This document shows positions 19,302 through 64,000 of a DNA stretch of 64,000 bases, piece after piece. The notes under the pieces are model-generated. The model worked only from the letters and a program-made list of their open reading frames with translations, was not told where the DNA came from and did no database searches. Every line of letters begins with the position of its first letter. The first letter of the stretch is position 1. Both the position numbers and the translations under genes were made by a program. Source of the DNA: Laetmonice hystrix (Eukaryota); assembly GCA_965235115.1 (NCBI GenBank), contig OZ249450.1:21824001-21888000 (forward strand), written 5' to 3'.

Positions 19302-19430
19302 NNNNNNNNNNNNNNNNNNNNNNNNNNNNNNNNNNNNNNNNNNNNNNNNNNNNNNNNNNNNNNNNNNNNNNNNNNNNNNNNNNNNNNNNNNNNNNNNNNN
19401 NNNNNNNNNNNNNNNNNNNNNNNNNNNNNN
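19302..19430. other. Assembly gap (N run)
   Basis: 129 Ns. Confidence 0.99.
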
Positions 19431-21597: not shown

Positions 21598-21876
21598 NNN
21601 NNNNNNNNNNNNNNNNNNNNNNNNNNNNNNNNNNNNNNNNNNNNNNNNNNNNNNNNNNNNNNNNNNNNNNNNNNNNNNNNNNNNNNNNNNNNNNNNNNNN
21701 NNNNNNNNNNNNNNNNNNNNNNNNNNNNNNNNNNNNNNNNNNNNNNNNNNNNNNNNNNNNNNNNNNNNNNNNNNNNNNNNNNNNNNNNNNNNNNNNNNNN
21801 NNNNNNNNNNNNNNNNNNNNNNNNNNNNNNNNNNNNNNNNNNNNNNNNNNNNNNNNNNNNNNNNNNNNNNNNNNNN
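21598..21876. other. Assembly gap (N run)
   Basis: 279 Ns. Confidence 0.99.
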
Positions 21877-29833: not shown

Positions 29834-32376
29834 GTGTAGGGCCTAGAATCACAAGCTTCACACGTCTAAATTGAAGGTATGAGCAAACAACTTTACCAGG
29901 CCTTTCTTGTTAACCATGAGTCTTGCAGTCAAGCATACATATATAAACCTACATGGAAATTTATGATTGGACCTACATATCTCTACCCGCCCACCCCAGT
30001 ACCATGAAACCTGCTTTTTTGATTAATCACATAATAATTTACTGTAACAGCAGACGCCAGCTGTTAATTAACAGCGCCGCGCGTTCTCTTCAAAGGCTTA
30101 CTAGAATGTCAACTTATTTTGGTTGTGGCACACTTGGGTGAGCACGCCAATTAAAATAATTTAAACAGTAATCAGCCATAATTGCTGTCCATTTGAGATC
30201 ATTAAACGCGTGAAATACGATGCAGATTTCTCACTTAGAGTCTCAATGTTAACATTAGAAGTAGCCCAGTGGAAGCTCTTGGCAATTACATGCACTTGGC
30301 TGGTCCATATTACGGGAGGAAAGGACGTTTCTGTATTTCCCGTCCTCTTTAATTTTGCGTTAATCAATTCCGACAGGCTCCCGTTCTGTCCAGCACGGGT
30401 CTTAGCGTTGTCCGATTTTAAACCGCCGGTGTTGATTTTCAAATGATTGCATCCTCTACTGTCAGCGTTTTATTCAGTTATCCGGAGGACCTGCTGGAAT
30501 GGCACATTGCTTTACAACAAAGGAGGGCTGAAATGGTGCCGTTTAGGCAAACATGACGTCTTGGTCAGGCTAAGAAAAATATTTTCTTGTCCCCACACGC
30601 GACACTTCCCCGTTGAGGCTTTGATTATCGTTTTCGTCAAGATTTATTCATGTAACCAACAACAATCGGCATTTGTCTGGCTGCATCTAAACAAAATAAA
30701 AATTTTAAACCATTTTTAAAAAGAGAGGACACCGACCAGATTTTCATTAAAAGGGACAAGAAACAAAACATTTTTGGCCTAAAGTGTGCAGAAAAGTGTT
30801 CAGGCGCACGCTAGAAACACGACTCCACAATGTGGAAATTACGGCTTCAGAAACATAGGACCCGAGACAAATATTATTGACACCAAACCTGCGCTGCGAA
30901 TCGGACTACAGTGTGACTACGTCATAATTGTAATGTTCTTATATCGATTCCGTCTCAAATAATGAGTTTGCCGGACTTCAAATGCCGTGCGGCGATGGCG
31001 GGGTCCTTCACATACAGATGGCTATTCTCAGCGGAAAGCGTTGAACGTTTAGTTTAGTCTGAGGGATGGATCCGCTGGGCGCTTGCATTCGCATGAATCG
31101 AATCGGAAAATACGACCCCTATGGGCAAGTAAACAATCCGTCTTACAATAATTAGGATACTTCTATAGAGAAAACACACCTGAAACCATCACATTGGAAA
31201 ACACAAAAACCACCAACGCTTGTGTGCATCCAGGTTTTAAGCACAGTCCTACTAGATCTATTCCTCTGGAACTATTGGAGTCTGAAATGGACTGGAAGTA
31301 CTTGCACTCTTCAAACCTGTAATTCACTTGTTCGAACTGTGCGCAAATAGAGGAGACCGCTGCCGCACCGCAGACCGATCATAAAGCAGAAACCAAGATT
31401 GGCTTTAATCAGGAAATGCGAGATGAATTACATTGGACTTTTGTGATGAGATGTGAGTACAAAGATCCTCTCAACCACAGAACCTCCCAGATTGATCTGA
31501 ATTAATGTTGTGGGGGTACCTTCTTATATTCCGTCTCCACAGCATTAATTCCCATCGGTCGTTTTGTCGATTTCAAAGGACTCTTTCCTCACAATGCGGA
31601 GTTTGCTTTTTTTAGATATTTTGATTAACAGTTTTTAAACGTTCATCCTAAAAAAAAGGTTCAGGACATATTGAATTATACATGATCAAAATGTGTTGTG
31701 CATGTTGCTGTAGCATAAATCCTGCCATGTGTGCTTGTCTTAATGCAATTATATTATTGTCATTACTCAACATCAACCTATCCATCTTCAGTCTTTTCTT
31801 TAAGAGCAGAAATTAAGAACGGCCGTAGTGCTTCTTTAATATAATTAAAACTGGTTCTTATTGAAAATCGTCATCCATCCCTGTGATCTTTAATAATTTA
31901 TCTGCAATTTTACGTCATTCCCAATCTCAAGGCAATTACAGTCGTAAAACGGCAAGTGCGAAGTCACAAAGCAAACAAATGGAAAACAGATCACATATAT
32001 TAAATTCTCATCTTTCTCAACTGGAGACGTTCGATCGATACGGTCTGTGGTTTATTACTGACAGACGAGTCACTTGCCCTTCCAATATCAAGCAGTGTAA
32101 ATAATTTAACAGGGTGTAGATAACACCAAAGTCAGGCTGCCCTATCATGTCCTTGCACGGCTCACTCGTTTTTCATTGCAGCCGATAGGTGGCGTTCTTA
32201 AATGACGGGTTTCCAATTGCTGTTTCCGGTTTCGTTTTGGCTGCTCGTACTGAACGCATCAAATTTAATGGATGTATTTATCAGAGACATACCGAACAGG
32301 CATCCATTGATAGCGATGAAAGTCCTAATCGTGTTAATATTAATGCACGACGGCACTTTCCTCCCCCGGATATTAA

Positions 32377-32454
32377 AGGCCAACTTGCGGGAGTACACTA
32401 CCGCGGCTAACGGCTATGAATACGAGGGGTCACGTGACTTTACCCAGTGGGCCT
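32377..32454. mobile_element. 78-bp TTAA-flanked mini-element (Kolobok-like)
   Basis: TTAA|AGGCCAACT ... AGTGGGCCT|TTAA; the adjacent tandem unit lacks it and shows a single TTAA. Confidence 0.7.
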
Positions 32455-34395
32455 TTAAGCTATGTTATTTCTGAGTTCGGTTTTCGCACGGACATACCGA
32501 ACAGGAATCCATTGACAGCGATGAATATCCTAATCGTATACGTACACGGTGGGGCTTTCCTCTCTCGGATATTAAGTTATATTATTTCTGAGTTCGGTTT
32601 TCCCCACGGGCATCCATATATTTCGTTGGATGCTCCCCACCACCACCACCCAATACACACCCTTTCCTCAAAGTTATAATTTTCTGCGTAGGAGCCTGTT
32701 TATATGTGTATTTTAATATCCAATTAGATGAATATATTTTCAAGTGTCCGAGCCACTTCCGGTATGCGGGCTTGTGTTGGTCACGTGACCACCTTGGCGG
32801 CCTTTACGATCAAGTGGACGTCGTTTTTTTTCTTCTTTTCTCTCCATTGTATTTTGTTTTCTCTTATGTTTTTCTTCTAGCATTTCTATAATAAATGCCG
32901 GAGCACATCTCTGGTTTACGGCAACCATGCGATGTTTTGTTGTCATTAGCTCACACCATAAAATATAACATCTTATAACCCTATACATTTATACCCAATA
33001 TCATGACACACTTTAACTTTAGACCTGGCTGTACTAAGCCTTTTTATGTGAATATAACTAACTATAATAAGTTTCCATTGCTTATGTGTATACAACATGG
33101 CCGCTTCACACAAAAGGAAGATGCCTAAGACTTAAACATTGAGCTCTAGTATCGCTTACGAATGAGCTTGCCGCACATAACTATCGTTCGTGTCTTGAGA
33201 ACAAAGACTGAAGGCAACACACCGCCAAAACAGAGCTAACAGACGACACAGAATATCACCTGGAAATTAAGGCAACTAGACGGAAACCATGGCAACACGT
33301 TCGTGATAAATTCACACTGGGTGTCGGGTTTCATTCAATCTATTGACTGCAATCTTCCCGCCCGTGGCAGTTTACACGACGCATTGTCTTAGCTTTTCTA
33401 TTTCATTTTCCTGCAGGAAATTTCAGCGGAGACTAATAGTTTCAACATCACATAAAGATTTCCGAACGCTACTGTATTAAAACCATGGTCCAAAGGAACA
33501 ACGGAATCCGGATTCAAGGGGGGTGGGGGTAACAACCCCCCCCCCCCCCCTTGGCAAACAATGTTTCTTTTTTCCTCATAGAACTTTCTGAATTGACCAT
33601 GCTGACCCAACCCCAACCCCACTTCCAGCCAAGCAAATTACCGCCCCCGCCCCATCCCTTACCAAAACCATGGACCCCCCCCCCCCCCCCCCCCCTCCAG
33701 GAAGATATCACTACATTTGGATTCCCCTCCCGCGCCCTTGAGGTGGAGGGATTGGGAACCAATCTATTGCTCTTGTCTACACAGACCCGGGTGTCATATC
33801 TGTACGTGGGTCCACCGTGCTTAGCCTAGCTATCTGTGCTGTCACAATGCTCCTCTTCCGACCAAATGGACATCGTATCTGTTCATCCATAGCCACCCTT
33901 TCAAAGCGCTACGTGAGCAGAAGACAGCTTGATCACAACGTCTGGTTGTCTGGAGACCAAGGGAAGGACACAGGGCCGATAGTGAGAGTACGATACGTAC
34001 GATACCTCAAATCATACATCCATGACCTTCCACGAACACAGGCAGGCAATGCGCAGGTTTTGAATAATTTCTATTTCTAGCTGATGAAACAGGCATCAAA
34101 ATTACCAGTTGTGTACAAAGTGACGCCCTGAAATTGCTAGGGAAGCTTAAGAACATCAGCTGGTAATTTACGGCATGGTCCGTTGTCCATCTACGTCCCA
34201 ATTTCTTATGTAATATGACAGGGCGACTCATTCTCAGCCAATCTACACCATGTCGCATTACATAATAATGATGGCGGCTTTATACGATTACCGCAACCAA
34301 ATGGCAAACCAGGTATTGTTGGACACACGGTATCAACACAGAAGATGAAACAAGAGTGAATTACCAGAGATCAATAATACAGGGAATGTGAGGGA

Positions 34396-34549
34396 NNNNN
34401 NNNNNNNNNNNNNNNNNNNNNNNNNNNNNNNNNNNNNNNNNNNNNNNNNNNNNNNNNNNNNNNNNNNNNNNNNNNNNNNNNNNNNNNNNNNNNNNNNNNN
34501 NNNNNNNNNNNNNNNNNNNNNNNNNNNNNNNNNNNNNNNNNNNNNNNNN
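34396..34549. other. Assembly gap (N run), flanked by AG-rich simple sequence
   Basis: 154 Ns. Confidence 0.99.
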
Positions 34550-49500: not shown

Positions 49501-52500
49501 GGTAAGTCACCGGGACTTTCATCTTTATAATGCAACAAACATGGCATATGTTGTACGGTTTATAAACAAACCAACATGATATAGTGTTATATGCGTTTGG
49601 TATATGTTATATGGTTTATAAACCACCTAACATGGTATATGTTATACGGTTTATATGGTATAGTGTTATAAGTTTTTGGTATATGTTATATGGTTTATAA
49701 ACCACCTAACATGGTATATGTTACATGTAGTTTATAACCAACTAACATTGTATATGTATACCCTAATTCTATTTCATACTCTTCCACTTTGGATTTCTTC
49801 CATTCACTGCAGTACAACTCTCAAACTCTGTCGGATGCGACCACTAGGAGAGCAGCTGGATTAAAAATGTATTTAGGTCTGTACCCCAGAGGGTATGTAC
49901 TGAACCGCAGGTGATAACTTTTTACATCTGAACCGAGCTTTATTTTCCTTTTCTTCTGCTGACTCATGATCAACTGAACTGACTGAGCATGTGAACAACT
50001 GAAGCAGGAACTTATGGCATGGACCAAACTTAGCATATGGAGAGAAGACTTCATCCAGAATATGAGTGATATTAACCTAATTAAACAACTAATACCAACA
50101 TACCAATCTCAGTTTGCTAGTTACTTGCTTTTGACGGGTACTCCAGTTGTTTCTACCCGTCACAACTGGTCGCTTCTATGCAGAGGTGTAAAACGTCAAT
50201 CCCATCCCAATCAATCCCCAAAGTCTATACATAAACCTTATAACTTATATCACTGTGGTAAATCCAAAATCCAAACCGATTATCAAAAAAATTGTTGAAA
50301 ATAACCCGTGGTATTTAGAGACAACCCTGAGAAGTAAAGAGCGTTTTTAAACCAGGGGGTTTGATTAATTTAGCGGTCATGTTACAGGTCATGTTGGCCA
50401 TGTCCTCGTTAGCTGCCAGTAGTTGTCAGCAGTAGGTGAGAACATTGTGGGGGGAGGGGCGCAGCCGTGTACTCCGTTACGTACACATAGACATGCAACT
50501 GGTGTTAGCAGGCCGCGGTGGTGGTCAGTAGGGGCTGGTGGGTCTGATCGATAACTGATCAATAACCGATAATGGCCAGCGCTGATCGCCGCCACTCCCT
50601 CCCCCCCCCCACCCCGCCCACTGTGAGTCTCAGACCTAATTAATCCCTCTCCCACCATCAGCATCCCAAGTTGTAATCAGCGCTGTGTACAAACAGGGAA
50701 GGCCCCACAGTTTGTCTGAGAGCGGGAAATGTTTGAATACACAGTCAACACGGTGGTGATTATTATTCTCCAAGATAGTTTACCGGGAATTCTGTACTCT
50801 CATAATAAGAGAACAGAATTTGGTGGCTGAATATTCCCCACTATCATACATATACTTTGGGAGTTTAATCCTGGTGATATATAATATTTGAGGTACATTT
50901 ATTATTACATGACATGATATTGCATGACATACCACAGCAGGCGGTCGACAGCCGTGGACCCCGTCGATCACTGACTGACTCTCCGACCCACCATACAAGA
51001 CGAGTCAGAGGTTTTTTTACCACTCCAAACGACAATGTATTAACAAACATGATTGATGGCTACGACTGGCAAGCTGCTCTCTTCATTTTTTTTATTTTTT
51101 TTTTGAGATTGAGGGAGGGCAGTTGTATTTCGTATGTCTACTTAATACTCCCGTGAAAGAAATTTCCGAATATGTATAACAGATTGCCACTGACTTCATT
51201 TAAATCAAGTGAGAAGTTGGTGGGCGATGACCAGTAAAAAGTCTATGATTGCGGCCTCGTCCTGTGACTCACCCACGTCCGAGCACCTGGTGTGAGGTGA
51301 AACTCATTACTAGAGACAGTCAGAGCACACCTGTGTTCATCAGTTATTGGTGATCAATCAGTCATTGTCACGGTCCATTGGTCGGCGGCCGGTCCCCTCC
51401 ATAACTACCCTCACTTGGTTGAGGTGACAAATGTAGAATGGACGCGATCAGAACACTAATTTCACCAATCAATAACACACTCAAACTTTCAAGTCCTATT
51501 AGCTAGCTCCGTATTCACTAATAGAAAACACATCGCTCTGCTGAAAATATAATTCTTGGCGTAGCTGAAATCAAAATTCCCTTTTCAAGTATTACGAATT
51601 GGTGACAGCAAACTTTTTTCCCATATTAATTTCAATACCACGGTAAAATTACTATGAATGAGAAATTTAACACATTTAACTTATTAAGCATCTGGTCCTA
51701 AATACCCCAAAGTGCCCCCCCCCCCCCATGGGAATTGATCAAGCCACGTCCTAGTAGACGCCATCGATCGCCCCTGACCTCCCACCCCCACCCCCACCCC
51801 CACCCCACCAGCTGACAGGGTCGTCAGCTGTGGCCCGCCGTAACTCAGCCCCATCCCCCGGCAGACAGCGACCGACAGTTGGTCGACCGTCGGACTGAGC
51901 CGGGACGAGTCTAGCCACTGCCAGGACACGTGTCCAACACGGCCCCCACCCGTACATCTACCCCGGCAACAACTGACTACTCGCTACACCCGACAACAAC
52001 GTCAGTGTGAGTCGAGGAAATCAACTCAACAACTGACTACTCGCTACACCCAACAACAACGTCAGTGTGTGTCGAGGAAATCAACTCAACAACTGACTAC
52101 TCGCTACACCCAACAACAACGTCGGTGGGAGTCGAGGAAATCAACTCAACAACTACTCGCTCCACCCAACAACAACGTCCGTGTGAGGCGAGGAAATCAA
52201 CTCAACAACTGACTACTGGCTACACCCGACAACAACGTCAGTGTGAGTCGAGGAAATCAACTCAACAACTGACTACTCGCTACACCCAACAACAACGTCA
52301 GTGTGAGTCAAGGAAATCAACTCAACAACTGACTACTCGCTACACCCGACAACAACGTCAGTGTGAGTCAAGGAAATCAACTCAACAACTGACTACTCGC
52401 TACACCCAACAACAATGTCGGTGTGATTCAAGGAAATCAACTCAACAACTGACTACTCGCTCCACCCAACAACAACGTCAGTGTGAGTCGAGGAAATCAA

Positions 52501-55500
52501 CTCAACAACTGACTACTGGCTACACCCAACAACAACGTCAGTGTGAGTCGAGGAAATCAACTCAACAACTGACTACTCGCTACACCCAACAACAACGTCA
52601 GTGTGAGTCAAGGAAATCAACTCAACAACTGACTACTGGCTACACCCGACAACAACGTCGGTGTGAGTCAAGGAAATCAACTCAACAACAATGCCGGTGT
52701 GAGTCAACAAATCAACTCAACCAAGGACACCAACAACTGACTACTCACTACAGTGACTACACCCAACAACAACGTCTGTGTGAGTCAAGGAAATCAACTC
52801 AACAACAATGCCGGTGTGAGTCAACAAATCAACTCAACCAAGGACACCAACAACTGACTACCGGTACTCGCTACACCCAACAACAGTGTGATTCAAGGAA
52901 ATCAACTCAACAACTGACTACTCGCTACACCCAACAACAACGTCAGTGTGAGTCGAGGAAATCAACTCAACAACTGACTACTCGCTACACCCAACAACAA
53001 CGTCGGTGTGAGTCGAGGAAGTCAAACTCAGCCAAGGACACCCCTAACTGCCAGCTTCTAACACAACCACACACACACGTCATACCTAACCATAGACTGT
53101 AAGAACTGCCAGCATGGTATAACCACAGATGAGCTCATCTGTGGTATAAACACAACAGCACACACAGTTAGTTCTCCATGGATTTATACACTACAGACTA
53201 CCAATAGGATTCTAACGTTAACTCCATTGTGTGACCATGTCAATCTGAACTCCTCAACTGTGATTACAGACGGCCACCAGCTCATCTTGCCGCTAGTTTC
53301 TCACGCCAAGAGAGAGTGGAAATTATCTGAGTCACATCAAGTTGGTACAATCTGACTCAACATTGGAGTGTGCTGAAATCCCAGCTACAGCACACAAGTA
53401 CTGCACACCTACCATCCTGACATGGATAGGTTATACAACTGTTGTAAACGGTATACCGAGTAAACTTCAGACGTAATCCTTACAAAAGGACATTAGGAAA
53501 TGGCCAAGTCGGCCTTGGCACACCAGGACAGACCATAATGTTCCCAATGTCTGGCCTGGGTTTGTTGTTTTACAATGAGGGTCAGACTTGAGAATCGGGA
53601 AGAGGTAGGTGTTCCAGAAGTAAACACATAAATGAGGGGGGCCCTTTCAGGGGAGGGGGTAGGAGATCAGAACCCCACGGCCCAAATTTCTGTCAATTTT
53701 TTAGATATCTAAAGTATCCTTATTTCACCTTGCTGGACCTTCCATTCTTGCCAGCTTTCCCTTTTCGACTCTAAAATTCAAGATCTATACCTCCACAGGA
53801 GATAAGGAAAAGGCAACTCTGGCCTGAGTAAAGTCTTCCTGAAGTTGATCGCAACTAGCATATTTCTGTGATATACATCCTACGGGGGCTGAGCACATAA
53901 TGGAGTCTTGTAACGATTATGTGTTCTGTAACCTGGAAATAGGGCGCGGAGGAGGCGAGCATGCTTTTTGAGATGTTCCGAATTGTAAAGTCAATTTTTA
54001 CAGGTGTTCTGCTCCCATTCCAGGTGTTAGAGTGGCCAAGGTGTGAGATCATCTTTATTCACCCTCCGACCCAGGAGGACTCGGACACCTCCAGCATGAG
54101 GACCGACACCATCAGCCTCGGTGACGAGGTTCGCTTCGCTCCCAATGTCATCACCATTGACCCCAACACACCGTCCGAGCCTGGCTACCACCCGGACTAC
54201 ATGCGGAGTGACTCCCCGCGGGGCCGCAAGCTCCGTGTCCAAGTTGTAACCAACAAACATGGCTTCATTGAACTCAACCTCTCCAATCTCGACCTCCGAG
54301 GTGTCCCTGCCGAGACTTTCAACTTCACCCGGATTGAGGTGCTGCGTCTGTCCAAGAACAAGTTGACAACAATACCGAGTGGCATTGCTCACCTGCGGCG
54401 GCTCCGGGTACTGGAGGCTCCAGCTAATGTCCTCCAGGTGTTACCAGACACTATCTCTAACTGCTCCCACATCCAGGAGATTGACCTGTCCCACAACTGC
54501 CTCAGTTCTCTCCCAACCACCTTTAATGCCCTCCGCCACCTTCGCATTCTCAAACTCGGTCATAATCAGTTTGAAAATCTCCAGCATGAACTCGGTGACC
54601 TCGAGTCACTCCGGCAACTTGACCTCCCAGGCAACAAACTCTGGCACCTGCCGAGCAGCCTAGCCAACCTCCGCAACCTACGACTGGTGAACTTGGGTCA
54701 GAACCTTTTCGAGCACCTGCCAGTGTGTCTGTGCCAGGCACGAGAGCTGGAGGCCATCGACCTGCGGGGGAACAAGTTAATCAACCTGCCTGCCGAGTGC
54801 GATAAGTGGCGCCAACTCAAAGAGCTCAACCTGTCTTCAAACCGGCTCGAGACCGTCCCCCACTGTATCTCTAACCTTCTCAACCTCCACTCTCTTGACG
54901 TCTCTCACAACAAACTCAAGAGTCTCCCGGCTCGCCTCTCTAAACTTCCCAAGCTCCGCGTCCTTATGGCCTGCGGAAACCAAATCACAAACATTCCAAA
55001 CAACTTTGAAATCCTTGAGTACCTAAACTTGACTGATAACCGAATAGTGAATTTTTCTGTGTCAAAAATGCGGCGGCTGAAGTACCTAAACGCGAGCCAC
55101 AATGCCCTTGAGAATCTCCCGCTTGGGGTGTGCAACCTGCCCCTTCTGGAGGTCCTAAAGCTGAACACCAACCGCATCAGTTACATGTCACAGGACATCA
55201 TCCTGCTCAAACACCTGAAGACTCTCGACATCGGTAACAACAAGCTGACCAGCCTCCCACACGTCATCAATGAGCTTGAGAGGCTCGAGACGTTTAACGT
55301 CCAGGGTAACAGGATTGACACACGAGATCACACTCCGAGGACGCGGTCCGCTCCCTTTGTCCAAGCGACAAACGGCCTTGCTGCCCACCAGGTCCGACAG
55401 CGGCACTCACGCGATGATCTCCATGGGAACGAAACTCATCCACTCTATGGGACCAAAGGAAACAAACAATCTTTGGATAAACCAAAGAACAAAAAGAGCC

Positions 55501-58500
55501 TCCAGCCTCATTCCAGAACTATAGCGACTCAATACACCCCCAAATCCAGCATTAAGATGCGGGAGAGGCCGCCACTGGACTATCAACCTAAAACCCACTC
55601 CCTCCCTTCCTACCCCCACTCACGGTTTGGGCACAGCGGCAATAACACCGAGCATCTCCAAGCAGACGGCACGAGTCTCCCAAACACGATACCTCGGAGT
55701 AGTGTCCCGAGGGACATGACCGAAATAACCTACCCCATGGAAAGGACAGTGGAAAAGTCCATCAATGCCAGGTCAGTGGCAGAGAAACTCTATGCTGAGA
55801 AATCTAGTGCCTCTCGGTCTTTGCTTGACAAGTCTCTTGAAGGCCGATCTCGTCATATCAGCAATCCTAGCCACTTGCCCATTACGACCATCGACGACAT
55901 CAAAACCTCCTACACCAGGAGATGGCTGGAAGGCCGCAAACCAAACGGCATTAACACAAGTGTGCGAAGTAATGCTGCCACTGTCAACGGTTCGGTTGGA
56001 GATGAACTCTCACTGGGCGAGGAGGATTACGAGTTCCAGCCAACGACCGTCCAGGATCAACGCCTCCTCGGAGTTTGTCAGCAAGTCGAGGCCATGCTCA
56101 ACAAACAAATGCTAGACCCGTTTGTCACTCCAAAAGGAATATTTCGGAAAAGGTACAAATTCAAATTCCTCCTGAAGTATTCAAAATGTATCACTTCAAC
56201 AATGCCTCTACTAAGTACTGCTAGAGGCTCTCAATTTTTTACACATACTCCCAAGTTTAATTTCTATTCATATTAATGAAACCACTAAAACTAAACTTCT
56301 TAATATTAGATGCGTAGTTTTAAACGGGAATATGTTATTTTCACCTTATTTCTCATGTGATGACCTCACACCCATTGCCATACTTGTGCCCACCATTTGT
56401 ATTTCACCAACAGCCTCAACGAGTACGGAACAATGCGCACCCTGAATGGTTTACATGATCCCAAGTATCACATGTATGAGGTGAACCCTGACCGCCGACA
56501 CAAGGTCAACGGTGCCATCCAAGTCTCCGACAATGTCTTCCTCAAGCGCCCCCTGGAGGCGGCTAACCCAAACATCCTCCTGCGTACCAAAGCCGACCAG
56601 TTTGACGTCACACCTGCTGGGGGTCTGTTCAAGTCGAGCGTCGATCCCAACATCAGCGTTTACTTCCCAGTCAAGGCCATCCCTGAACCTCTGACTATAA
56701 CCCTGCAGGTTAGCTTTTTACAATGTTACGCTTAAGGGCAGGGCTAGGGCTAATGATCCTATGTTCACTGCGCACCTCCACTGATTAAGAAAAAAATTTT
56801 TAAACTGTTTTATACCAAGCTTGGTGAAAGAAATAAGACAAAGATTGACATGATTTGCTGTGAACTCCAGATGGTGTGAAGGTTTTGTATATTTTGTAAA
56901 AAGTGTTTAAGACCTTTTGAGGCATAAAAATGGGAAAAGAAGATGAAAAAAATCGAAAACAAATCTATGGGCTCCAAACCTGAGCCACAACAGACTCTCA
57001 AAAAACGTCTTTACAAACTTTCCTATGCTATCATGTAGGAACTGTGTTTGAGATCTGTGTATTTTACAGCTGGAGAAGGTTGACCAGGAGGCTCTGCTCC
57101 AGGCCAAGCGCCACGACCCCATCATCAACAATATCTTGGCCATGGGCCACGTCGTACACGTCACCCAGTCGCACGACATCGACTTCCAGGAGCAGGTGAC
57201 ACTTACCATTCCAGCACCTCCCGCTCCAAAACGTGGGAAACTGCACCTCATGACGTACCATGAGGATAACTCATGCTCGCCGTGCACCTCGCCGTACAAG
57301 GTCTACCAAGGCTACATATCGCTGCAGGCTTGGCACTTCTCTGGGTCAGTACCAAAACTTCTCTCCATCTAGATTTTTAATTACTCAGTCATGACGCATT
57401 AACAATATCCAAACTATATAGTTTTAATAACATGCCGTTTAAACTAAATGCAAACATCAACAAAGATTTTAATAGTAGAATAACAAAATTATATTAATAA
57501 CATAATATTTTCTGTTTCCAGCAAAGGTGCTGTGTTGACGAGTTCTAAGTGCAAGTACAAGGCTTGCAAGTCAGTGGAGCAGCTTTTGTCCACCCTGTAC
57601 ATATAATACAAACTTTTTAATGGATCATAAAACCCTAAACCCCAGGAAAAGACTTCCTTCAATGGATTATTGCTTGGGCTTGCTGAAATAAACTCGAGTA
57701 CTACCGAGTACGTGAGCAGAAAGTGTGTGGAACTGTGTGTGTGAAACACATTGTAATAGTTTTGGTTGGTGTGGCTCTGGTTCAGTACCAAGATCTCTGG
57801 CTCTAGATCATGTTGTGGGAGTGCCAGCCAAGTCTACAGGAACCTTCTGCCAGCCAAGCCTACAGGAGTGTACACATTCTGCCAGCCAAGCCTACAGGAG
57901 TGTAGACATTCTGCCAGCCAAGCCTACCTGTCGAGTGTACACAAATGTCCATCTATAAACCAAGGTCTAACTCCTGCCAGCCAGCCTCGCTGGTCACTGG
58001 ACACTCACTGTGCCAGCCAAGCCTGGTCTGTATGCCATGGCAAAAACCAACCCTGCTGGAGGTTCATTGTACGGAAAGGGTTGAAGGAGAAAACACTGCC
58101 ATATAAGTCAGCCGTGAGGTGGTATATTATAATATCAAGGACCAAGCAAACTGTGGTCATGTGATACCAATGTTATACTGTCACAAATGTTAGCTGCATC
58201 CTCCCCCTGCCAGCAAAACAAAATTGACTTCTGTTTTATCAAGTTATGACCTATATGTACCAGTATTCCCAGGAGGGAGGTCAGTTAACATAATCTTTAT
58301 TAAGGTACCTCAACTTGACTATTTTCATTCCTTGTTATGTACTTTTACTGTTATTACTAAGACATAACCTGTCTTGTTTATGATTGTACGACCAAATATC
58401 TTGACGTTAACAAAATAACCAATGTCGTCATTCCACTTGATGTTACTTACATCACAGTTTCTCTCACCATACTTGTATACTTGCACAAATTCAGCTAATA

Positions 58501-61500
58501 AAGGTTATATTATAAATCTATTAGTTCAAGAGAACACCTGTGGGGATAGTTAGCTTCTTGGACTCAATAAACTACAACTCCAAAGCACTTTACGTTTCGG
58601 TATGTGTAAGAAAAACAATGTATTTCCTGAGTAGACCTTAGCCGTAACGAAATTCAGTAAGGATTTTTGAGAAGAAACTATGATATGGCAGAAGCATTCA
58701 ACTTCAGACCAAATAGAGCTAAGACAGACTCGAAATTGAGACTTCAAGTTCAAGTCACTTTGTCTACTTCATGCATTGTGGAACCTGCATAACAACCGCC
58801 TCAGCTAAGTGACCACCTCTCAGCTAAGACCATATTGGCTAGTATAAATACTAAAAATATTTCCTTCCACAAGTCGCCCAGTAACATGCATGCAATCCCA
58901 TTATTCAACCACAAAAAGTTCGGCCCCACAGCCGGCCCACTGTACTTGTCTATTCCTGCATGCCTCGGAAGACTACAACAAATTCTTTGTATCACCTTTC
59001 CGACAAATGAAGTTGGTATAATCTACTCACCATTGTAGAAGAGGAATGGCAGGTCGAAGGGTGGAATGGTTCGGTTTCGGGGCACGTCGCTACTGACCAG
59101 GGTACAGCGCAGCATGTACTCCTGACCATCTTTGCCGACCGTGTTCTCTTGGATCATCAAGTTCTGCAAGAACAACAATAACATACTCACTCGAGGTTTC
59201 TACACAGACTCGGGTATTTACAGAAATTCAAGGGAAAAATTCTTGGATACCAAAAAAATCTTCCGAAAACTCTGATGTGTCTTCCTGGCTTAAATCACTG
59301 TCCAGGATGAAACAACGAAATGCAATGGCATTTCAATGAGACGTAACGGCCTGTTCAAGAGCCTTTCACATTTTACACCTGGACCAATAACATGCCCCTA
59401 ACATTTCATAAACAGGTCAATATAAACCAACCCTGCTACTTTAGAAATGACAGCTGATTTTAAGACGTTCCGTGACGTACCTGTAAGATGGCGCTCCCCT
59501 TTGAGAATGGTACCTCCATCTGTGTGGTGTTTCCGACCAGTTCCGGTAGCTCCGAGGCATCCTCCTCATTGTCAGCTGTCACAGTCATGACCAGTTTCCC
59601 CTCAATGTCCAGTCCCGTCACGTTTCCGTATTGGTCCTAGAACGGATCGACACCAAAACATGATTGAAGCCACCACAATATCTGTTATCAGGGCAATACG
59701 ATGGACTGCAGTGTTCTCGCCAGAACGTTTGATAGTATAGCAGTCAATATCAATCAAAGAATAGACCAGTAGTTTAGAGGTTTCCTAATATTTACCTTCC
59801 CAGGATATCATACAGCTAGAATCTTATATTATGTTGAATTTAAACCATTTTTAGCACTACACTGTTTCAATAACACTTGTGAAAATCTCAGACTCATTCA
59901 GACCTTTTAAGGACTTTAAGGACGAGTCCCTTTGCCCATTTTTCCCCACGACTTCCCCTGAGCTGTTTAAACCCTGATGAGTAGTAAAACACTCTCCAAG
60001 GAGCGTGAAGCCAGCCGCTGAACCCACCCACCTGTAATTCCAACTTGAGTAACTTGAGCAGACTACGACTGTTTTGGTTCTTGGTGTTAGAGACTGTGAT
60101 TGTCCCAGGGAGATGGATGGGGACGAGTTTAGAGGCTGGTCCTGGCTGGACGTTAATGGCAATCTGATTGCTGAACACCTCGTGTTTGTTGTCCGAGTAA
60201 ATGAACATGATGTTGTGAGTGCCTGACGTTTCGGGAACTCGACGGTTACTGTGCAAACATACACGTACAATAATGAAAATTGGTGTTAACTTTCAGCACT
60301 ACTAACAACATTAAAAGCCACAGCCATTTTAACTTCACTGAAACTTCCTGTACATCTCCAATGCCTTACAACTGACTTATACTTTTTTGTTACGACTAAA
60401 GTTGCTCCAACTTCAACAGAGATGGGGAAATTCAAGAGCAGATTCCTTGGAACTAACCTGAAGTAAAAAACACCATCCTGATCATTTTTCCGTTTCGTGT
60501 CAGGTGGGTGAGTGACAGCTTTGTTTGGGGGCCGTGCTGTCAGACCATCCGCCTTCCATAATTTCATATTCAAACACGATGCCTTTGCTGTTGCCATGAC
60601 GCTGTCATCCTCAGACAGAATTCGTACTGTGAAGTCTGAAACCACAGATTTCTTGCTCAATCTTCAAAGGATGACACCAAAAAAAGTCTTGTTTCAAAAC
60701 TGGCTATTATTAGCTCATTCCGTACTTTGTAATCAACAACACTTCAATTCTGACAATTCTGACAAAAATATTACTCAAATTACAAACAATTTTTTTTTCC
60801 AATTATTAAGACCTGATAAAATTCAACGAGAGCTCACACCCCTACCTGGTAGTTCCTCGCCAACTGTGTAGGTGGCGTTCTTATCATACTCGACGACGAT
60901 GTTGACCGGTTTGGTTTGGTCTGGTTGAATATTAATCTTGATCTTGGGACCTGAGATGGTGGTTCGGCCCATGAAAGCCTTCGGCTGTATCTCGTATACC
61001 CCTCTACAAACACCAGGGCAAGTGGTAAATTAGTATGTTCAGTACTTGATGGTTGTCATGGCAATATTACCTGGCAAACTTCAGTCACAGAGTATCAGCT
61101 GTCTTCTTCAATTGTTTAGTAATTAATTTAAGTAGAATAAATAAAATTGTACATCCAAAAGGTCACAGCACTAAAAACTTTAGAATAACACTTATAACTG
61201 ATGCTATCATAATTGATAAATAATAGCAAGGAGAAAAATATGAATTTATGTATGAATCATGGGGTCTCTTGATATTTGTACAATGGTAACAAAAAAACTT
61301 TAAATATTTTAAAATTATATTTCAAAGCAATGTTGGCTGGTGCCAGTTTTACCTTTTTCCTGTGACTGTGAAGGTTCCAAAATCAGCACGACCATTCTTG
61401 TCTGTCTTGAGTGGCTGAGGCGAAGGGGCAAGCTGTAGAAGAGATCAGTAGTTTCCTGATATATTTACTTAAAATAAACTGACAGAATTTCAGGACAGGA

Positions 61501-64000
61501 TCAATTCCATCATTCCTGCAACCATCACACATGCAAATTGAAGATTTTTGTAAAGAACAGTGCAGGCGATTTTTAAGACCTACATTTCTATGAAACTTCC
61601 GGTTAAACATAAAATTTTAATGGTACTTAAGTTAACAAAGGAATTCTGAAATCTGAGACCTTTTTTAGATCTTTGCGGGGAAAAAAACATAATTTAAAAC
61701 TTTTTAAGGCCAAGTTATTGAATGTATAATCAATATGAGGACTTTTCAGGCTTTTCAAGGATCTACAATACCATTACCACTGATGTTGGCATACAGCAGT
61801 TGATGAGCGCCGTACATGAATGCTGACTTACCAGCACAGTAATGATTGACAAGTCGATGGGAGTTTACCTTGATGCCAGGGTCCCTGGCTAGTTGTACAC
61901 GTATGTTGGGTTCAGCGGTCGGGTTGCCTCCTGCGTCACACAGCTGTACCATCAGTGACTGTTGTAGCTTGTTCTCATTGTATACAGAAATAGGCTAGCA
62001 AAACAAAAACACAAAGTTACCATTACATACTTAAACCATATGGATTACATCATCACTAAAGAGCCAACGACTAAGACATATTTCAAAATGTGTCTTTACC
62101 CATTTTCATATTATTTAAACTAATGTATTTTAAAGAGGTTTTCAATGCAAGACAGACAGAGGACAGTTCAGAGTACAATTTTTAAACGTAGACAATCTCA
62201 ATATTTGTATTTCTAACATTCAGTCATTGTTCACATTTTCATGCTTACCTGTAGAACATCCCAGTCTGGTATGGTTAACTTGGCCGGGGGTCCAGCAATC
62301 ATCTGTAGGCGGACGTAGTCAGTCATACCACGCCAGCTGACGACAACTTCGCGGCTGCCCAGGGTGCCTGACTGGAAGCGGATGCCGTGGATGTTGAAGC
62401 CGGAGCTCTGACCAAGCGCCCGGACCGTTTCCTCCAGCACCAGACCTTCACCCGTCACAGACAGATCCTTCAACACCCCCTTCTCCAGCTGTAATTTAAT
62501 ATTTGTAACATCAGTAAACATTCAAAAAATAACATCGAACCACTACCTAAACTCACACCAACATCAGTAAACATTCAAAAAATAACATCGACCTAAACTC
62601 ACACCAACATCAGTAAACATTCAAAAAATAACATCGACCTAAACTCACACCAACATCAGTAAACATTCAAAAAATAACATCGACCTAAACTCACACCAAC
62701 ATCAGTAAACATTCAAAAAATAACATCGACCTAAACTCACACCAACATCAGTAAACATTCAAAAAATAACATCGAACCACGACCTGAACTCACACCAACA
62801 TCAGTAAACTTTAAAAAAATAACATCGAACCATGACCTAAACTCACACCAACATCAGTAAACATTCAAAAATAACATCGAACCACGACCTAAACTCACAC
62901 CAACATCAGTAAACATTCAAAAAATAACCTCAAACCACGACCTAACCTCACACCAACATCAGTAAACATTCAAAAAATAACATCGAACCACGACCTAACC
63001 TCACACCAACATCAGTAAACATTGAAAAAATAACATCGAACCACGACCTAAACTCACACCAACATTCAAGAAAGTTGACTTGAGACTGTAGCTGTTGGCC
63101 CTACTTCTCATTTTTAAGTTCATGACAGGAACGGAGAGAAATCTTTTACCTTTTTGATCTCGTTGCCATGTTTGTCCTTGACCCCAACAAGGATGTCTCC
63201 CTGGAGTTTTTCTCCCATCTTGACAGAATTGTCTCCGCTAAGTTTACACTTTATTTGAGATGGCTCTCCTGGCATTGACCTAAATACATGAACAAACAAG
63301 AAGATATTATTACGTCCTTCAACATGCAGGAAACAGGAGAAAAAAAGAAAATTGGAAATTTGAACTATTCAAATTTCAATCAATTGTCCACACTTACTTG
63401 ACGGTAAAAGCGAACTCCAGGCCCGAACCGTCGCCCAGTGAGATGTGACAGTATTTGGTGTCAGCGACAAGGTTTGGTACCTTGACGTCTGGCAGAGTAC
63501 CGTGTGCTACGTCTTCCTTTGATACCTTCGGTGTCCAGTTCACTTTCACCTTATTCATAAACTCATCGTCTATGTCCTTGGATCGCCCCGCTTCATCTGT
63601 TACTTTGAAGGCTGAAATTTTTATAAACAACCACCATGATTGAAAATAGTCACAAAAGAAAGCGCAGGGCCCTGGTTCTCGGAGAGCTCATACTGCGCAA
63701 GCTCAGGAACTATAGGTGTCTCAGACTTATGGTTCATGAGCTCAGCATTGAATTTCAACTATTGTTTCACGAGGAAACCAGCCCGAGGGTTTATTGGGGA
63801 ACGAGGTTTATCTAGGCTTCTCCTAGACCTCTGTCAATCAATGGTGCAAGGCAAAGTAACAAATGACAAAAATGACAAGACAATGCCTGTCTTGCCACAG
63901 TGGATGAAGAAAGACATCGGCAAGATGAAGCCTAGTTATTCAGGATAGGTTACCAAGTCCCTTGATGGTCTGGCCTGCGATGCCGTAGATATCTTGGCCT
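43352..64000 (-). CDS. SMCHD1: SMCHD1 orthologue, 3' ~half (21 exons, ~973 aa; 5' end beyond window)
   Basis: Spliced translation follows recalled vertebrate SMCHD1 collinearly ([115 protein letters not shown]); all 20 introns are GT-AG with matching phases. Confidence 0.96.
43994..44152 (-). CDS. SMCHD1: SMCHD1 exon (C-terminal coiled coil)
   Basis: [53 protein letters not shown]; phase 1 to 1. Confidence 0.92.
44384..44555 (-). CDS. SMCHD1: SMCHD1 exon (hinge)
   Basis: [46 protein letters not shown]...; phase 0 to 1. Confidence 0.96.
44839..44909 (-). CDS. SMCHD1: SMCHD1 exon (hinge)
   Basis: [24 protein letters not shown]; phase 1 to 0. Confidence 0.96.
45101..45207 (-). CDS. SMCHD1: SMCHD1 exon (hinge)
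   Basis: [35 protein letters not shown]; phase 2 to 1. Confidence 0.93.
45363..45451 (-). CDS. SMCHD1: SMCHD1 exon (hinge)
   Basis: [29 protein letters not shown]; phase 0 to 2. Confidence 0.95.
46012..46113 (-). CDS. SMCHD1: SMCHD1 exon (hinge)
   Basis: [34 protein letters not shown]; phase 0 to 0. Confidence 0.96.
46276..46395 (-). CDS. SMCHD1: SMCHD1 exon
   Basis: [40 protein letters not shown]; phase 0 to 0. Confidence 0.93.
46451..46636. repeat. Short-period (~13-15 bp) AGTGTCACAGTT tandem repeat
   Basis: More than 12 degenerate copies of GTGTCACAG in an SMCHD1 intron. Confidence 0.9.
46889..46974 (-). CDS. SMCHD1: SMCHD1 exon (coiled coil)
   Basis: [29 protein letters not shown]; phase 1 to 0, donor GTAAGT. 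Confidence 0.9.
47069..47110 (-). mobile_element. Fragment resembling the conserved V-SINE/Meta-type SINE central domain
   Basis: Reverse complement GGTCGGTGTTTTTCCCGGGATACTCCCGTTTCCTCATCCAT resembles the recalled GGTTTTCTCCGGGTACTCCGGTTTCCTCC motif. Confidence 0.45.
47147..47315. mobile_element. hAT-like poly-G/C MITE
   Basis: CAGGATTTCCTGTAGG ... CCTCTAGGAAACCCTG (13 of 16 inverted match). Confidence 0.65.
47686..47805 (-). CDS. SMCHD1: SMCHD1 exon (start of coiled coil)
   Basis: [40 protein letters not shown]; phase 1 to 1; joined to 59031 across an 11.2-kb intron. Confidence 0.96.
47940..48016. repeat. 33-bp G-rich tandem repeat, ~2.3 copies
   Basis: CAATCAGGGGGTTTGGGGCAGGGGCAGAGGTAA at 47940, 47973, 48006. 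Confidence 0.85.
49540..49760. repeat. Degenerate AT-rich tandem repeat (TGGTATATGTTATATGGTTTATAAACCACCTAACA-like)
   Basis: Recurring GGTATATGTTA / GGTTTATAAAC motifs. Confidence 0.7.
51968..53018. repeat. 60-bp minisatellite, ~17 units with variants
   Basis: AACAACTGACTACTCGCTACACCCAACAACAACGTCAGTGTGAGTCGAGGAAATCAACTC; one plus-strand frame is open (52065-53102). Confidence 0.95.
54075..56152 (+). CDS. Nested gene exon: LRR array plus linker
   Basis: Pyrimidine-rich acceptor CTTTATTCACCCTCCGACCCAG; LRRs from ELNLSNLDL to TFNVQGNRI; donor AG|GTACAA. Confidence 0.9.
54075..57606 (+). CDS. Nested LRR-ZU5 protein (PIDD1-like domains, no death domain), 4 coding exons, ~900 aa
   Basis: Exons 54075-56152, 56414-56708, 57070-57344, 57522-57606 join in frame (phases 2, 0, 2); 16 LxxLxLxxNxL repeats, S/R/P-rich linker, ZU5 (VTPAGG..S..P.I.V.FP..A...P..I.LQ ... 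F...VT..IP.P) ending in WHFS. Likely start is ATG 54096 (A at -3) or an unseen upstream exon. Confidence 0.88.
56414..56708 (+). CDS. Nested gene exon: pre-ZU5 segment and ZU5 N-terminal half
   Basis: SLNEYG...[45 protein letters not shown]; acceptor CCAACAG, donor GTTAGC. Confidence 0.9.
57070..57344 (+). CDS. Nested gene exon: ZU5 C-terminal half with HFS motif
   Basis: [10 protein letters not shown]...[26 protein letters not shown]...[12 protein letters not shown]; acceptor TTTTACAG, donor GG|GTCAGT. Confidence 0.9.
57522..57606 (+). CDS. Nested gene last coding exon
   Basis: Acceptor TTTTCTGTTTCCAG; [30 protein letters not shown]; AATAAA at 57687-57692. Confidence 0.7.
57687..57692 (+). 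terminator. Candidate polyadenylation signal of the nested gene
   Basis: AATAAA ~80 nt after the predicted stop; further AATAAA at 58497 and 58566. Confidence 0.4.
57822..57945. repeat. ~32-bp tandem repeat (GCCAGCCAAGCCTACAGGAGTGTACACATTCT), ~4 copies
   Basis: Repeated GCCAGCCAAG motif, with partial copies near 57975 and 58010. Confidence 0.85.
59031..59163 (-). CDS. SMCHD1: SMCHD1 exon
   Basis: [44 protein letters not shown]; phase 0 to 1. Confidence 0.94.
59481..59636 (-). CDS. SMCHD1: SMCHD1 exon
   Basis: [52 protein letters not shown]; phase 0 to 0. Confidence 0.94.
60032..60248 (-). CDS. SMCHD1: SMCHD1 exon
   Basis: [43 protein letters not shown]...[12 protein letters not shown]; phase 2 to 0. 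Confidence 0.92.
60458..60635 (-). CDS. SMCHD1: SMCHD1 exon
   Basis: [28 protein letters not shown]...[10 protein letters not shown]; phase 1 to 2. Confidence 0.94.
60846..61003 (-). CDS. SMCHD1: SMCHD1 exon
   Basis: [52 protein letters not shown]; phase 2 to 1. Confidence 0.94.
61353..61432 (-). CDS. SMCHD1: SMCHD1 exon
   Basis: [26 protein letters not shown]; phase 0 to 2. Confidence 0.92.
61869..61994 (-). CDS. SMCHD1: SMCHD1 exon
   Basis: [42 protein letters not shown]; phase 0 to 0. Confidence 0.94.
62249..62488 (-). CDS. SMCHD1: SMCHD1 exon
   Basis: [16 protein letters not shown]...[46 protein letters not shown]; phase 0 to 0. Confidence 0.95.
62507..63065. repeat. 53/46-bp minisatellite, 11 units, filling most of an SMCHD1 intron
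   Basis: AACATCAGTAAACATTCAAAAAATAACATCG(AACCACG)ACCTAAACTCACACC; starts at 62507, 62560, 62606, 62652, 62698, 62744, 62797, 62850, 62902, 62955, 63008. Confidence 0.95.
63150..63279 (-). CDS. SMCHD1: SMCHD1 exon
   Basis: [43 protein letters not shown]; phase 2 to 0. Confidence 0.94.
63398..63611 (-). CDS. SMCHD1: SMCHD1 exon
   Basis: [46 protein letters not shown]...LEFAFTV; phase 1 to 2. Confidence 0.95.
63954..64000 (-). CDS. SMCHD1: SMCHD1 exon, truncated by the window edge
   Basis: [15 protein letters not shown] then donor GTAACC; phase 1. Confidence 0.85.

Follow-up and report, generated by a model that had tools for sequence, protein, structure and literature searches.

A complete spiralian LRR-ZU5 gene in Laetmonice hystrix that ends at the ZU5 fold and carries a variably conserved HFS motif

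The 64,000-nt stretch of Laetmonice hystrix DNA analysed here (contig OZ249450.1; the window) holds a real, complete, single-copy gene for a 903-aa protein in which leucine-rich repeats (LRRs) are followed by a poorly conserved, fast-evolving linker, a short conserved block and a single ZU5 domain, and which finishes where the ZU5 fold finishes. Judged from sequence comparison, it belongs to an uncharacterised orthologous LRR-ZU5 family found across Spiralia, in molluscs, annelids, a brachiopod and a nemertean. In the reading that we consider probable, the gene encodes a complete scaffold or adaptor, presumably cytoplasmic, in which the ZU5 domain and its C-terminal tail are conserved and self-cleavage would be dispensable.

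Four coding exons joined by GT-AG introns keep an open frame from an ATG at 54096 to the stop (Table 1), which bears out the gene model of a preliminary description of this DNA, including the end at 57606 and the nearby AATAAA. The span that it had given, 54075 to 57606, stands as regards the exons, the frame and the end, but the coding sequence starts later, at that ATG; position 54075 is preceded by AG and may be a 5'UTR splice acceptor. Exon 1 closes on the donor AG/GTACAA at 56152/56153 and is spanned end to end, with matching start and stop points, by P0001 (80% identity) and P0002 (60%). Exon 2, inside which the ZU5 fold begins (near aa 740, nt 56574), is present likewise in the relative L001 and was also matched in the genome search, and exon-sized ORFs in other species finish at the same W-x-x-x-G as exon 3. 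The junction at 57344/57522, the tail and the stop recur in L001 and in annotated proteins of Owenia, Lingula, Lineus, Pecten, Haliotis, Patella, Mytilus, Elysia and Octopus, and it is this comparison that supports the junction as well as the 3' end and the lack of alternative isoforms. A search of sequencing runs for this species returned three, all DNA-like contig runs of a single study. This gene is the only locus that the family profile found in the 627-Mb genome.

Table 1. Features of the LRR-ZU5 gene, in positions of the window
Feature	Start	End	Strand	Remarks
Coding exon 1	54096	56152	+	aa 1-685 plus two bases; N-terminus, LRR domain, linker, conserved pre-ZU5 block
16 leucine-rich repeats	54255	55331	+	aa 54-412; Pfam LRR_8 1.4e-43, LRR_4 1.4e-31, LRR_14 3.5e-30
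Linker	55332	55958	+	aa 413-621; no Pfam match; length and sequence vary
Conserved pre-ZU5 block	55959	56152	+	aa 622-685, including a 48-residue stretch; alignable in Lingula, Owenia, molluscs and P0003-P0005
Coding exon 2	56414	56708	+	spacer and first ZU5 strands; orthologue alignment continues over the exon edge (TITLQ/LEKVDQ)
Coding exon 3	57070	57344	+	ZU5 core to hairpin W-H-F-S-G; genome match E 5.2e-40
HFS codons CAC TTC TCT	57334	57342	+	H873, F874, S875; candidate autoproteolysis site F874/S875
Coding exon 4	57522	57606	+	last ZU5 strand (KGAVLT), 19-residue Lys/Cys-rich C-terminal helix, stop TAA at 57604-57606
AATAAA poly(A) signal	57687	57692	+	81 nt past the stop; predicted

The LRR count of 16 agrees with that first given, three of the repeats being read by eye; they start at aa 54, 77, 100, 123, 146, 169, 192, 215, 238, 261, 284, 304, 325, 348, 371 and 394. 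The matches of the LRR domain favour PIDD-like proteins no more than LRRC40-, SHOC2- or LAP-like ones. The linker that follows is probably disordered: the equivalent residues of the Owenia orthologue have a pLDDT below 50 in the AF2 model, and orthologue linkers range from about 150 to 700 aa. When the LRR domain and the C-terminal region of the Lingula protein were modelled as a complex, the score was 0.00, which speaks neither for nor against docking.

For the ZU5 domain, which had also been recognised in the preliminary description, the family profile and the modelled fold both match ankyrin ZU5. Pfam found no match in single exons 2-4 of the window, the domain being divided among three exons, and among orthologues the Pfam ZU5 profile (PF00791, cut-off 21 bits) scored 31.4 bits in Sinanodonta and 17.3 bits, below the cut-off, in Lingula, with no match in Owenia. 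The family profile, searched against the PDB, reached ankyrin ZU5 at 1e-10, and it matched Ank-ZU5-Death proteins down to 1e-20. Structure was modelled with AF2 for the Owenia orthologue in place of the window's own spliced protein, and that model has a pLDDT above 90 over residues 51-220. Foldseek matched it to ankyrin-B (4d8o) at E 3.7e-08, and VIA-align superposed 151 residues on the ZU5C region of the same structure (Z 17.9, rmsd 2.2 A). The tandem ZU5 structures of ankyrin-B and ankyrin-1 gave Z 16.4-17.9 over a model range that extends to 217-219; ZU5N alone and UNC5b (Z 8.8) match the model only to 198-200. Structural matches in AFDB included PIDD1 455-611, which aligns with model residues 61-213, DTHD1 and ANK3, and there were weaker matches to CARD8, NLRP1 and GAIN domains (Z 6-8.5). 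As modelled, the domain is one complete ZU5 of the type of ankyrin ZU5C and the second ZU5 of PIDD1.

The protein runs for 28 residues beyond HFS and then stops. This early end had been described before, and orthologues finish alike: the tail is shared by about 15 of them, among molluscs, annelids, the brachiopod and the nemertean, and in at least 12 named species from four phyla the protein stops 0-9 aa beyond it. The Owenia model folds the tail into a strand (192-198) and a helix (203-219) at pLDDT 90-98, and the helix is matched in ankyrin ZU5C as well (model range to 218). The preliminary description had suggested that the protein could expose the tail as a 29-aa peptide; at a pLDDT above 90, however, the tail is no appendage but the last strand and the C-terminal helix of the ZU5 fold. 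Its motif K-C-K-Y-K-A-C-K-S is conserved better than anything else in the family. By column counts, C891 is kept in 17 of 17 sequences, and P855 and C853 are present in 33/33 and 32/33, respectively, of the family alignment. A zinc or disulfide cluster of C853, C886 and C891 was considered. The Owenia protein is without C853.

Neither a UPA nor a death domain (DD) is detectable in any frame of the window. The preliminary description had found neither in the protein, and its statement that no death-domain-like exon lies in the remaining intron before 59031 agrees with three blank searches. ORFs between 57345 and 59038 had no Pfam match, tblastn with five UPA-DD tails returned nothing in the same interval, and custom HMMs for DD and UPA, applied to all six translated frames of the entire window, gave a best E of 0.95, with positive controls at 4.7e-30 and 2.9e-07. 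One marginal tblastn match, to a death-domain tail at 32226-32516 (E 0.024), is interrupted by a stop, has no further signal behind it and was set aside as chance. That UPA or death-domain exons have been missed, or that the locus is what remains of a longer gene in decay, is extremely improbable. The splice structure and the 3' end do rest on comparison, which leaves such a reading its opening, but the frame is intact, the sequence is conserved across phyla, the same stop follows the same tail in L001 and in RefSeq and other models from four phyla, and a poly(A) signal lies shortly downstream. Exon-like ORFs on the minus strand, moreover, begin near 59023-59190, and the contig of a relative has downstream minus-strand ORFs, with SMCHD1 Ig domains. 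Such Ig domains are seen downstream in the relative's contig only; in the window, the convergent minus-strand gene, from about 59023, had no Pfam match. The short end is natural and not a truncation, and ending at the ZU5 fold is probably the ancestral state of the family; the protein would not be a truncated PIDD.

The HFS codons lie where they had first been placed. In the Owenia model, the cleavage-motif hairpin sits between strands 182-187 and 192-198, and NLRP1 ZU5 fragments terminating at the cut (6x6a_B, which ends at 1212, and 7crv_C) align up to model residues 190-191, the F/S position; the modelling thus supports a location of HFS at the structural position of known ZU5/FIIND autocleavage sites (NLRP1/CARD8, PIDD1 S588). 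It is possible, if doubtful, that the ZU5 domain is an active self-cleaving module which in this species cuts itself at F874/S875. An LRR-ZU5 fragment of 874 aa would then carry, non-covalently attached, a strand-plus-helix peptide of 29 aa, an arrangement comparable with the tethered strand of GAIN or the UPA fragment of FIIND, and unfolding or degradation of the N-terminal fragment could free the peptide. The intact H-F-S-G in the hairpin preceding the last strand, the reach of the cut-ended NLRP1 fragments and the presence of CARD8, NLRP1 and GAIN among the structural matches are in keeping with such a module, as are the closest outgroup ZU5-death-fold proteins, which read HFS, SFS or HFT at the aligned position. 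However, an HFS motif does not by itself predict cleavage, the ZU5 domains of ankyrin and UNC5 are to our knowledge not cut, and the C-terminal fragment would be without a known effector domain.

Conservation of the motif also bears on this question. HFS is found in only 11 of 33 family sequences, with H in 21, F in 18 (F or L in 31) and, at the nucleophile position, S, T or C in 25 (S in 17) and A, E or K in eight. Several lineages have lost the nucleophile (L001, Candidula, Octopus, Mya, Pinctada, Dimorphilus and two more), while the tail is invariant. The preliminary description had spoken of a retained self-processing site and had named loss of HFS in close orthologues as evidence against it; L001, at 60% identity, reads HFA, and with eight of 33 sequences lacking the nucleophile the site does not hold up as one kept by selection. 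Among the sampled relatives the nearest, P0283 (84% identical), retains HFS, and 25 of 33 members have the nucleophile, so for part of the family cleavage could be of importance. The histidine is not strictly needed in Nup98 or CARD8, and fragments remain associated once cut (PMC3210808), which again leaves room for self-cleavage. From these sequences, self-cleavage may be chemically possible in this species, though we regard it as the less likely case, and it does not appear to be the conserved function of the family. A long shot would be a minimal tethered-peptide switch, with autocleavage at HF/S and the 29-aa Lys/Cys-rich peptide (last strand and KCKYKAC helix) held non-covalently until the LRR-ZU5 part unfolds or is degraded and lets it go as the active signal. 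If true, this would be a FIIND- or GAIN-like logic in which a peptide replaces the death-fold effector, in a lineage from which no PIDD is reported.

A homologue search started from the C-terminal region of Lingula recovered nothing beyond the query, and family members were gathered by exhaustive profile search. In the ZU5 tree, they form a group (SH-aLRT 89) whose internal branching follows taxonomy and which takes in a single stray row on a long branch, P0233. The family's nearest ZU5 relatives are ankyrin, DTHD1 and PIDD1-like proteins alike, and the tree does not separate them; hemichordate PIDD1-like rows are placed away from the family, with weak deep nodes. The label "PIDD-like" in the preliminary description is accordingly not specific, and a particular kinship to PIDD is not supported. 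The same description had suggested a decoy or partner for a PIDD-type pathway, a protein that would mimic the LRR-ZU5 half of PIDD and modulate a PIDDosome-like pathway with no signalling of its own. We consider this very unlikely. The order of LRR then ZU5 is that of PIDD1, PIDD1 455-611 matches well structurally, and some orthologues have been named automatically "LRR and death domain-containing protein 1-like"; but ankyrin-type and DTHD1-type ZU5 domains match equally or better, the LRRs are no more PIDD-like than LRRC40-, SHOC2- or LAP-like, the hemichordate PIDD1-like proteins are not tree neighbours, and there is a single ZU5 rather than two, with UPA and DD absent. A published exhaustive search reported PIDD to be absent from lophotrochozoan genomes (PMC11463336), which leaves no such pathway for a decoy to act on.

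In the scaffold or adaptor reading, the protein is made up of the 16-repeat LRR solenoid, the fast-evolving linker, the conserved short block and the single complete ZU5, to which the tiny exon 4 adds the final beta-strand and the C-terminal helix. The HFS triplet, intact in this species, may descend from the autoprocessing hairpin seen in ZU5-UPA-death-fold proteins. The repeated loss of the nucleophile in the family, set against a KCKYKAC tail helix that is almost invariant, suggests that the conserved function is partner binding; the LRR domain and the intact ZU5-plus-tail domain would bind partners, and no signalling fragment would be released. ZU5 domains are known mainly within ZU5-UPA-death-fold modules (ankyrin, UNC5, PIDD1, NLRP1/CARD8), in which autocleavage frees an effector, whereas here a conserved single-copy spiralian family has a complete ZU5C-type domain alone behind a sensor-like LRR domain. 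With the cleavage motif decaying and a new Lys/Cys-rich terminal helix frozen, the structural and self-processing roles of the ZU5 hairpin appear separable, and the natural HFS, HFA and HLA variants offer material for testing what lets a ZU5 domain cut itself. Some names that databases assigned automatically ("lap4-like", "scribble homolog", "LRDD1-like") are misleading and are corrected by these results, and "LRRC7-like" is another name that orthologues received in this way; practical importance is modest pending a partner or phenotype.

Among known systems, ankyrin ZU5C/ZU5B, the second ZU5 of the ZU5-ZU5-UPA-DD supramodule (PDB 4d8o, 3ud1/3ud2), is the best match in sequence and fold, including the helix after the last strand, but ankyrin has its own ankyrin repeats, a first ZU5, UPA and DD, whereas the present protein has LRRs, a single ZU5 and nothing past the helix, and the KCKYKAC motif is specific to this LRR-ZU5 family. 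PIDD1 is an LRR-ZU5-ZU5-UPA-DD protein that autocleaves at HF/S446 and HF/S588, and it shares the LRRs upstream of ZU5 and an HFS placed in the hairpin that precedes the final strand of a ZU5. In the family described here, HFS is not conserved, orthology to PIDD1 has no tree support, and only one ZU5 matches the profile, a second tandem copy not being found in the linker, which has no Pfam match or fold; with a single ZU5, no UPA and no DD, no RAIDD-binding fragment could be released. The FIIND of NLRP1 and CARD8 is a ZU5-UPA unit with SF/S autocleavage, and the GAIN domain of adhesion GPCRs is cut at HL/T or HL/S. Both are the same beta-sandwich cut just before the last strand, with fragments that remain together afterwards (PMC3210808), and the HLS, HLT and HFT versions seen in the family are similar to the GPS motif, but the fold match is weaker, and their post-cut fragment is a UPA-CARD or 7TM effector where ours would be 29 residues. 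With the LAP proteins (Scribble, Erbin, LRRC7, LRRC1) and the LRRC40/SHOC2-type proteins, this protein has its 16 cytoplasmic-type LRRs in common, but they are without ZU5 and the LRR similarity, about 30%, is generic; unlike LAP proteins, this protein has no PDZ domain by Pfam. The C-terminal ZU5 of ZO-1 (PDB 2kxr; Z 7.1) aligns only to model residue 190 and is therefore without the last strand and helix kept in this family, and the remaining PDZ-SH3-GuK architecture is unrelated, but it provides a precedent for a terminal ZU5 domain with neither UPA nor DD.

The spliced product of the LRR-ZU5 gene is encoded by 903 codons of open frame across four exons, with GT-AG introns throughout, and its 16 LRRs occupy residues 54-412 (Pfam LRR_8, 1.4e-43). 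The preliminary description proved accurate for every item that it listed (exons, LRRs, linker, HFS motif, tail, and AATAAA), with the exception of the start of the coding sequence, which lies at 54096. A search of the 627-Mb genome with the family profile found a single locus, the one in the window.

Coordinates of the LRR-ZU5 gene and neighboring features in the window
Feature	Position	Strand	Content
Coding exon 1	54096-56152	+	16 LRRs and long linker
Coding exon 2	56414-56708	+	
Coding exon 3	57070-57344	+	
HFS codons	57334-57342	+	CAC TTC TCT; splice donor two bases further on
Coding exon 4 (last)	57522-57606	+	27 residues, then TAA
Poly(A) signal	57687		AATAAA, 3' of TAA
60-bp tandem repeat	51967-53030		18 copies, 82% matches
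345-aa repeat ORF	52065-53102	+	Q-, T-, and R-rich 20-aa units, one Cys each
32-bp repeat	57822-57927		~3.6 copies (TGCCAGCCAAGCCTACAGGAG...)
Convergent neighbor gene	59023-63630	-	Series of exon-like ORFs
N runs (gaps or masked)	19302-19430; 21598-21876; 34396-34549		

Whether the protein truly ends shortly after HFS, lacking a UPA or death domain, or whether a downstream exon was missed, was judged by comparison with relatives. Searching with exon 1 recovered orthologues in Owenia fusiformis, Lingula anatina, and Sinanodonta, as well as ORF fragments of closer relatives at 80% and 60% identity, and a profile of the C-terminal region, run against 1.84 billion representatives, recovered ~15 full family members, from Pecten, Haliotis, Patella, Mytilus, Candidula, Elysia, Plakobranchus, Octopus, Biomphalaria, Mya, Pinctada, Dimorphilus, and Lineus. 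Complete orthologue models end 0-9 residues beyond the common tail, and in L001, the genomic locus of the 60% relative, the exons, the junction directly after W-H-F-x, and the stop are at matching places. No death domain or UPA was detected anywhere in the window with home-made HMMs (positive controls, 4.7e-30 and 2.9e-07), tblastn with five UPA-DD tails gave no convincing match across the window, and Pfam gave none on the ORFs downstream of the gene; the exon-like ORFs beginning near 59023 are on the opposite strand. Given the orthologue tails, the matching L001 exons and stop, the empty searches, and the single genomic locus, the short C-terminus is, on this sequence evidence, the native and ancestral state of a single-copy gene, and a missed exon is barely credible.

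Six database protein models of family members, P0133 (Plakobranchus), P0134, P0141, P0011, P0127, and P0132, are mis-ended at the last intron, either by intron read-through or by a stop at the exon edge W-x-x-x-G, which hides the conserved tail exon. In L001 (13187-13662), an extra intron between ..FKEQ and VTLT divides what in the window is one undivided exon, coding exon 3. The 60-bp repeat lies ~1 kb upstream of the start codon, its ORF gives no Pfam match, and the 32-bp repeat directly follows the poly(A) signal. None of the minus-strand ORFs of the convergent neighbor has a Pfam match; this gene may be SMCHD1-like, since ORFs downstream of the orthologue in the contig of the 80% relative carry Ig_SMCHD1_7th and 8th domains.

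For the Sinanodonta orthologue the Pfam ZU5 match is significant, at 31.4 bits, and for Lingula it stays below the threshold. Ankyrin ZU5 structures match the family profile at 1e-10, and matches reaching 1e-20 come from deuterostome and spiralian proteins of the Ank-ZU5-Death, DTHD1, and PIDD1-like kinds. The structural view of the domain comes from an AF2 prediction for the last 220 residues of the Owenia orthologue, in which pLDDT is >90 from residue 51 on and a strand (182-187), the W-H-F-S turn (188-191), a second strand (192-198), and a helix (203-219) follow in order. This model matches the ankyrin-B ZU5-ZU5-UPA-DD tandem over 151 residues (model 51-218; Z 17.9, rmsd 2.2 A) and ankyrin-1 ZU5A-ZU5B (Z 16.6), whereas isolated ZU5N and UNC5b match only as far as residues 198-200 and the match to ZO-1 ZU5 stops at residue 190. 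The best AFDB matches are DTHD1, ANK3 1141-1307, and PIDD1 455-611. Because of the strand and helix that close the model and the ankyrin tandem match, the 29-aa Lys/Cys-rich peptide of the preliminary description is predicted not to be a loose appendage but to complete a ZU5C-type fold by supplying its final strand and closing helix. As judged from sequence and model, the family has an architecture new among ZU5 proteins, in which LRRs are joined to a single, complete domain of the ZU5C type that closes with a Lys/Cys-rich helix specific to the family. A literature search found no description of the family, the automatic database names of its members contradict one another, and all of its members with a species name to date are spiralian. 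The proposed role as a decoy in a PIDD pathway appears highly improbable, as there is a single ZU5 and neither UPA nor DD, the tree, whose deep nodes are weak, shows no specific PIDD affinity, and an exhaustive survey did not find PIDD in lophotrochozoans (PMC11463336).

At the place aligned with HFS, outgroup ZU5-death-fold proteins carry HFS, SFS, HFT, or VFT. The NLRP1 ZU5 fragments 6x6a_B (to residue 1212) and 7crv_C, which end at the natural cut, align to the Owenia model up to residues 190-191, and the second ZU5 of PIDD1, where S588 sits, covers the corresponding part. D'Osualdo et al. placed the cut just ahead of the last strand, with the fragments remaining associated, and found Ser essential, Phe structural, and His dispensable (PMC3210808). 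Based on these alignments and this cut position, the HFS in the window is the homologue of a genuine autoprocessing site and is predicted to be chemically competent.

Conservation of the site is weak, and HFS is lost in close orthologues, an outcome that the preliminary description had named as counting against its view of a retained self-processing site. Over 33 family sequences, His is found in 21 and Phe in 18 (F or L in 31), and the nucleophile position holds Ser in 17, Thr in 7, Cys in 1, and Ala, Glu, or Lys in 8. HFS is kept in the closest fragment (84% identity) and is also read in Owenia and Lineus, and Lingula has HFC; the nucleophile losses are scattered, comprising L001 (HFA), Candidula (QFA), Octopus (HLA), Mya (NLA), Pinctada (TLE), Dimorphilus (TAK), and two further sequences. 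Nearly invariant are P855 (33/33), C853 (32/33), C891 (17/17), and the tail helix K-C-K-Y-K-A-C-K-S-[VM]-E-x-L-L. Since the triad decays while these persist, selection seems to act on the intact domain and tail and not on the cleavage triad. Self-cleavage in Laetmonice hystrix itself is less likely than not, though quite conceivable. Residues 853-891 (nt 57274-57566) hold three almost invariant Cys, C853 in D-N-x-C-x-P and C886 and C891 in C-K-Y-K-A-C, together with a run of five lysines. This stretch might form a disulfide, bind metal, or be palmitoylated, or it might act as a basic helix that contacts a membrane or a partner. Outgroup ZU5 proteins also carry a helix here, but one that lacks Cys.

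The LRR-ZU5 protein is probably a cytoplasmic scaffold, a reading by analogy that draws on this conservation pattern and on domain precedents, namely the binding of spectrin by ankyrin ZU5 and the terminal ZU5 of ZO-1. The LRR solenoid and the ZU5-plus-tail domain would each have binding partners, and cleavage at HFS would be optional. If cleavage does happen, the fragments should remain together, as do those of CARD8 and NLRP1.
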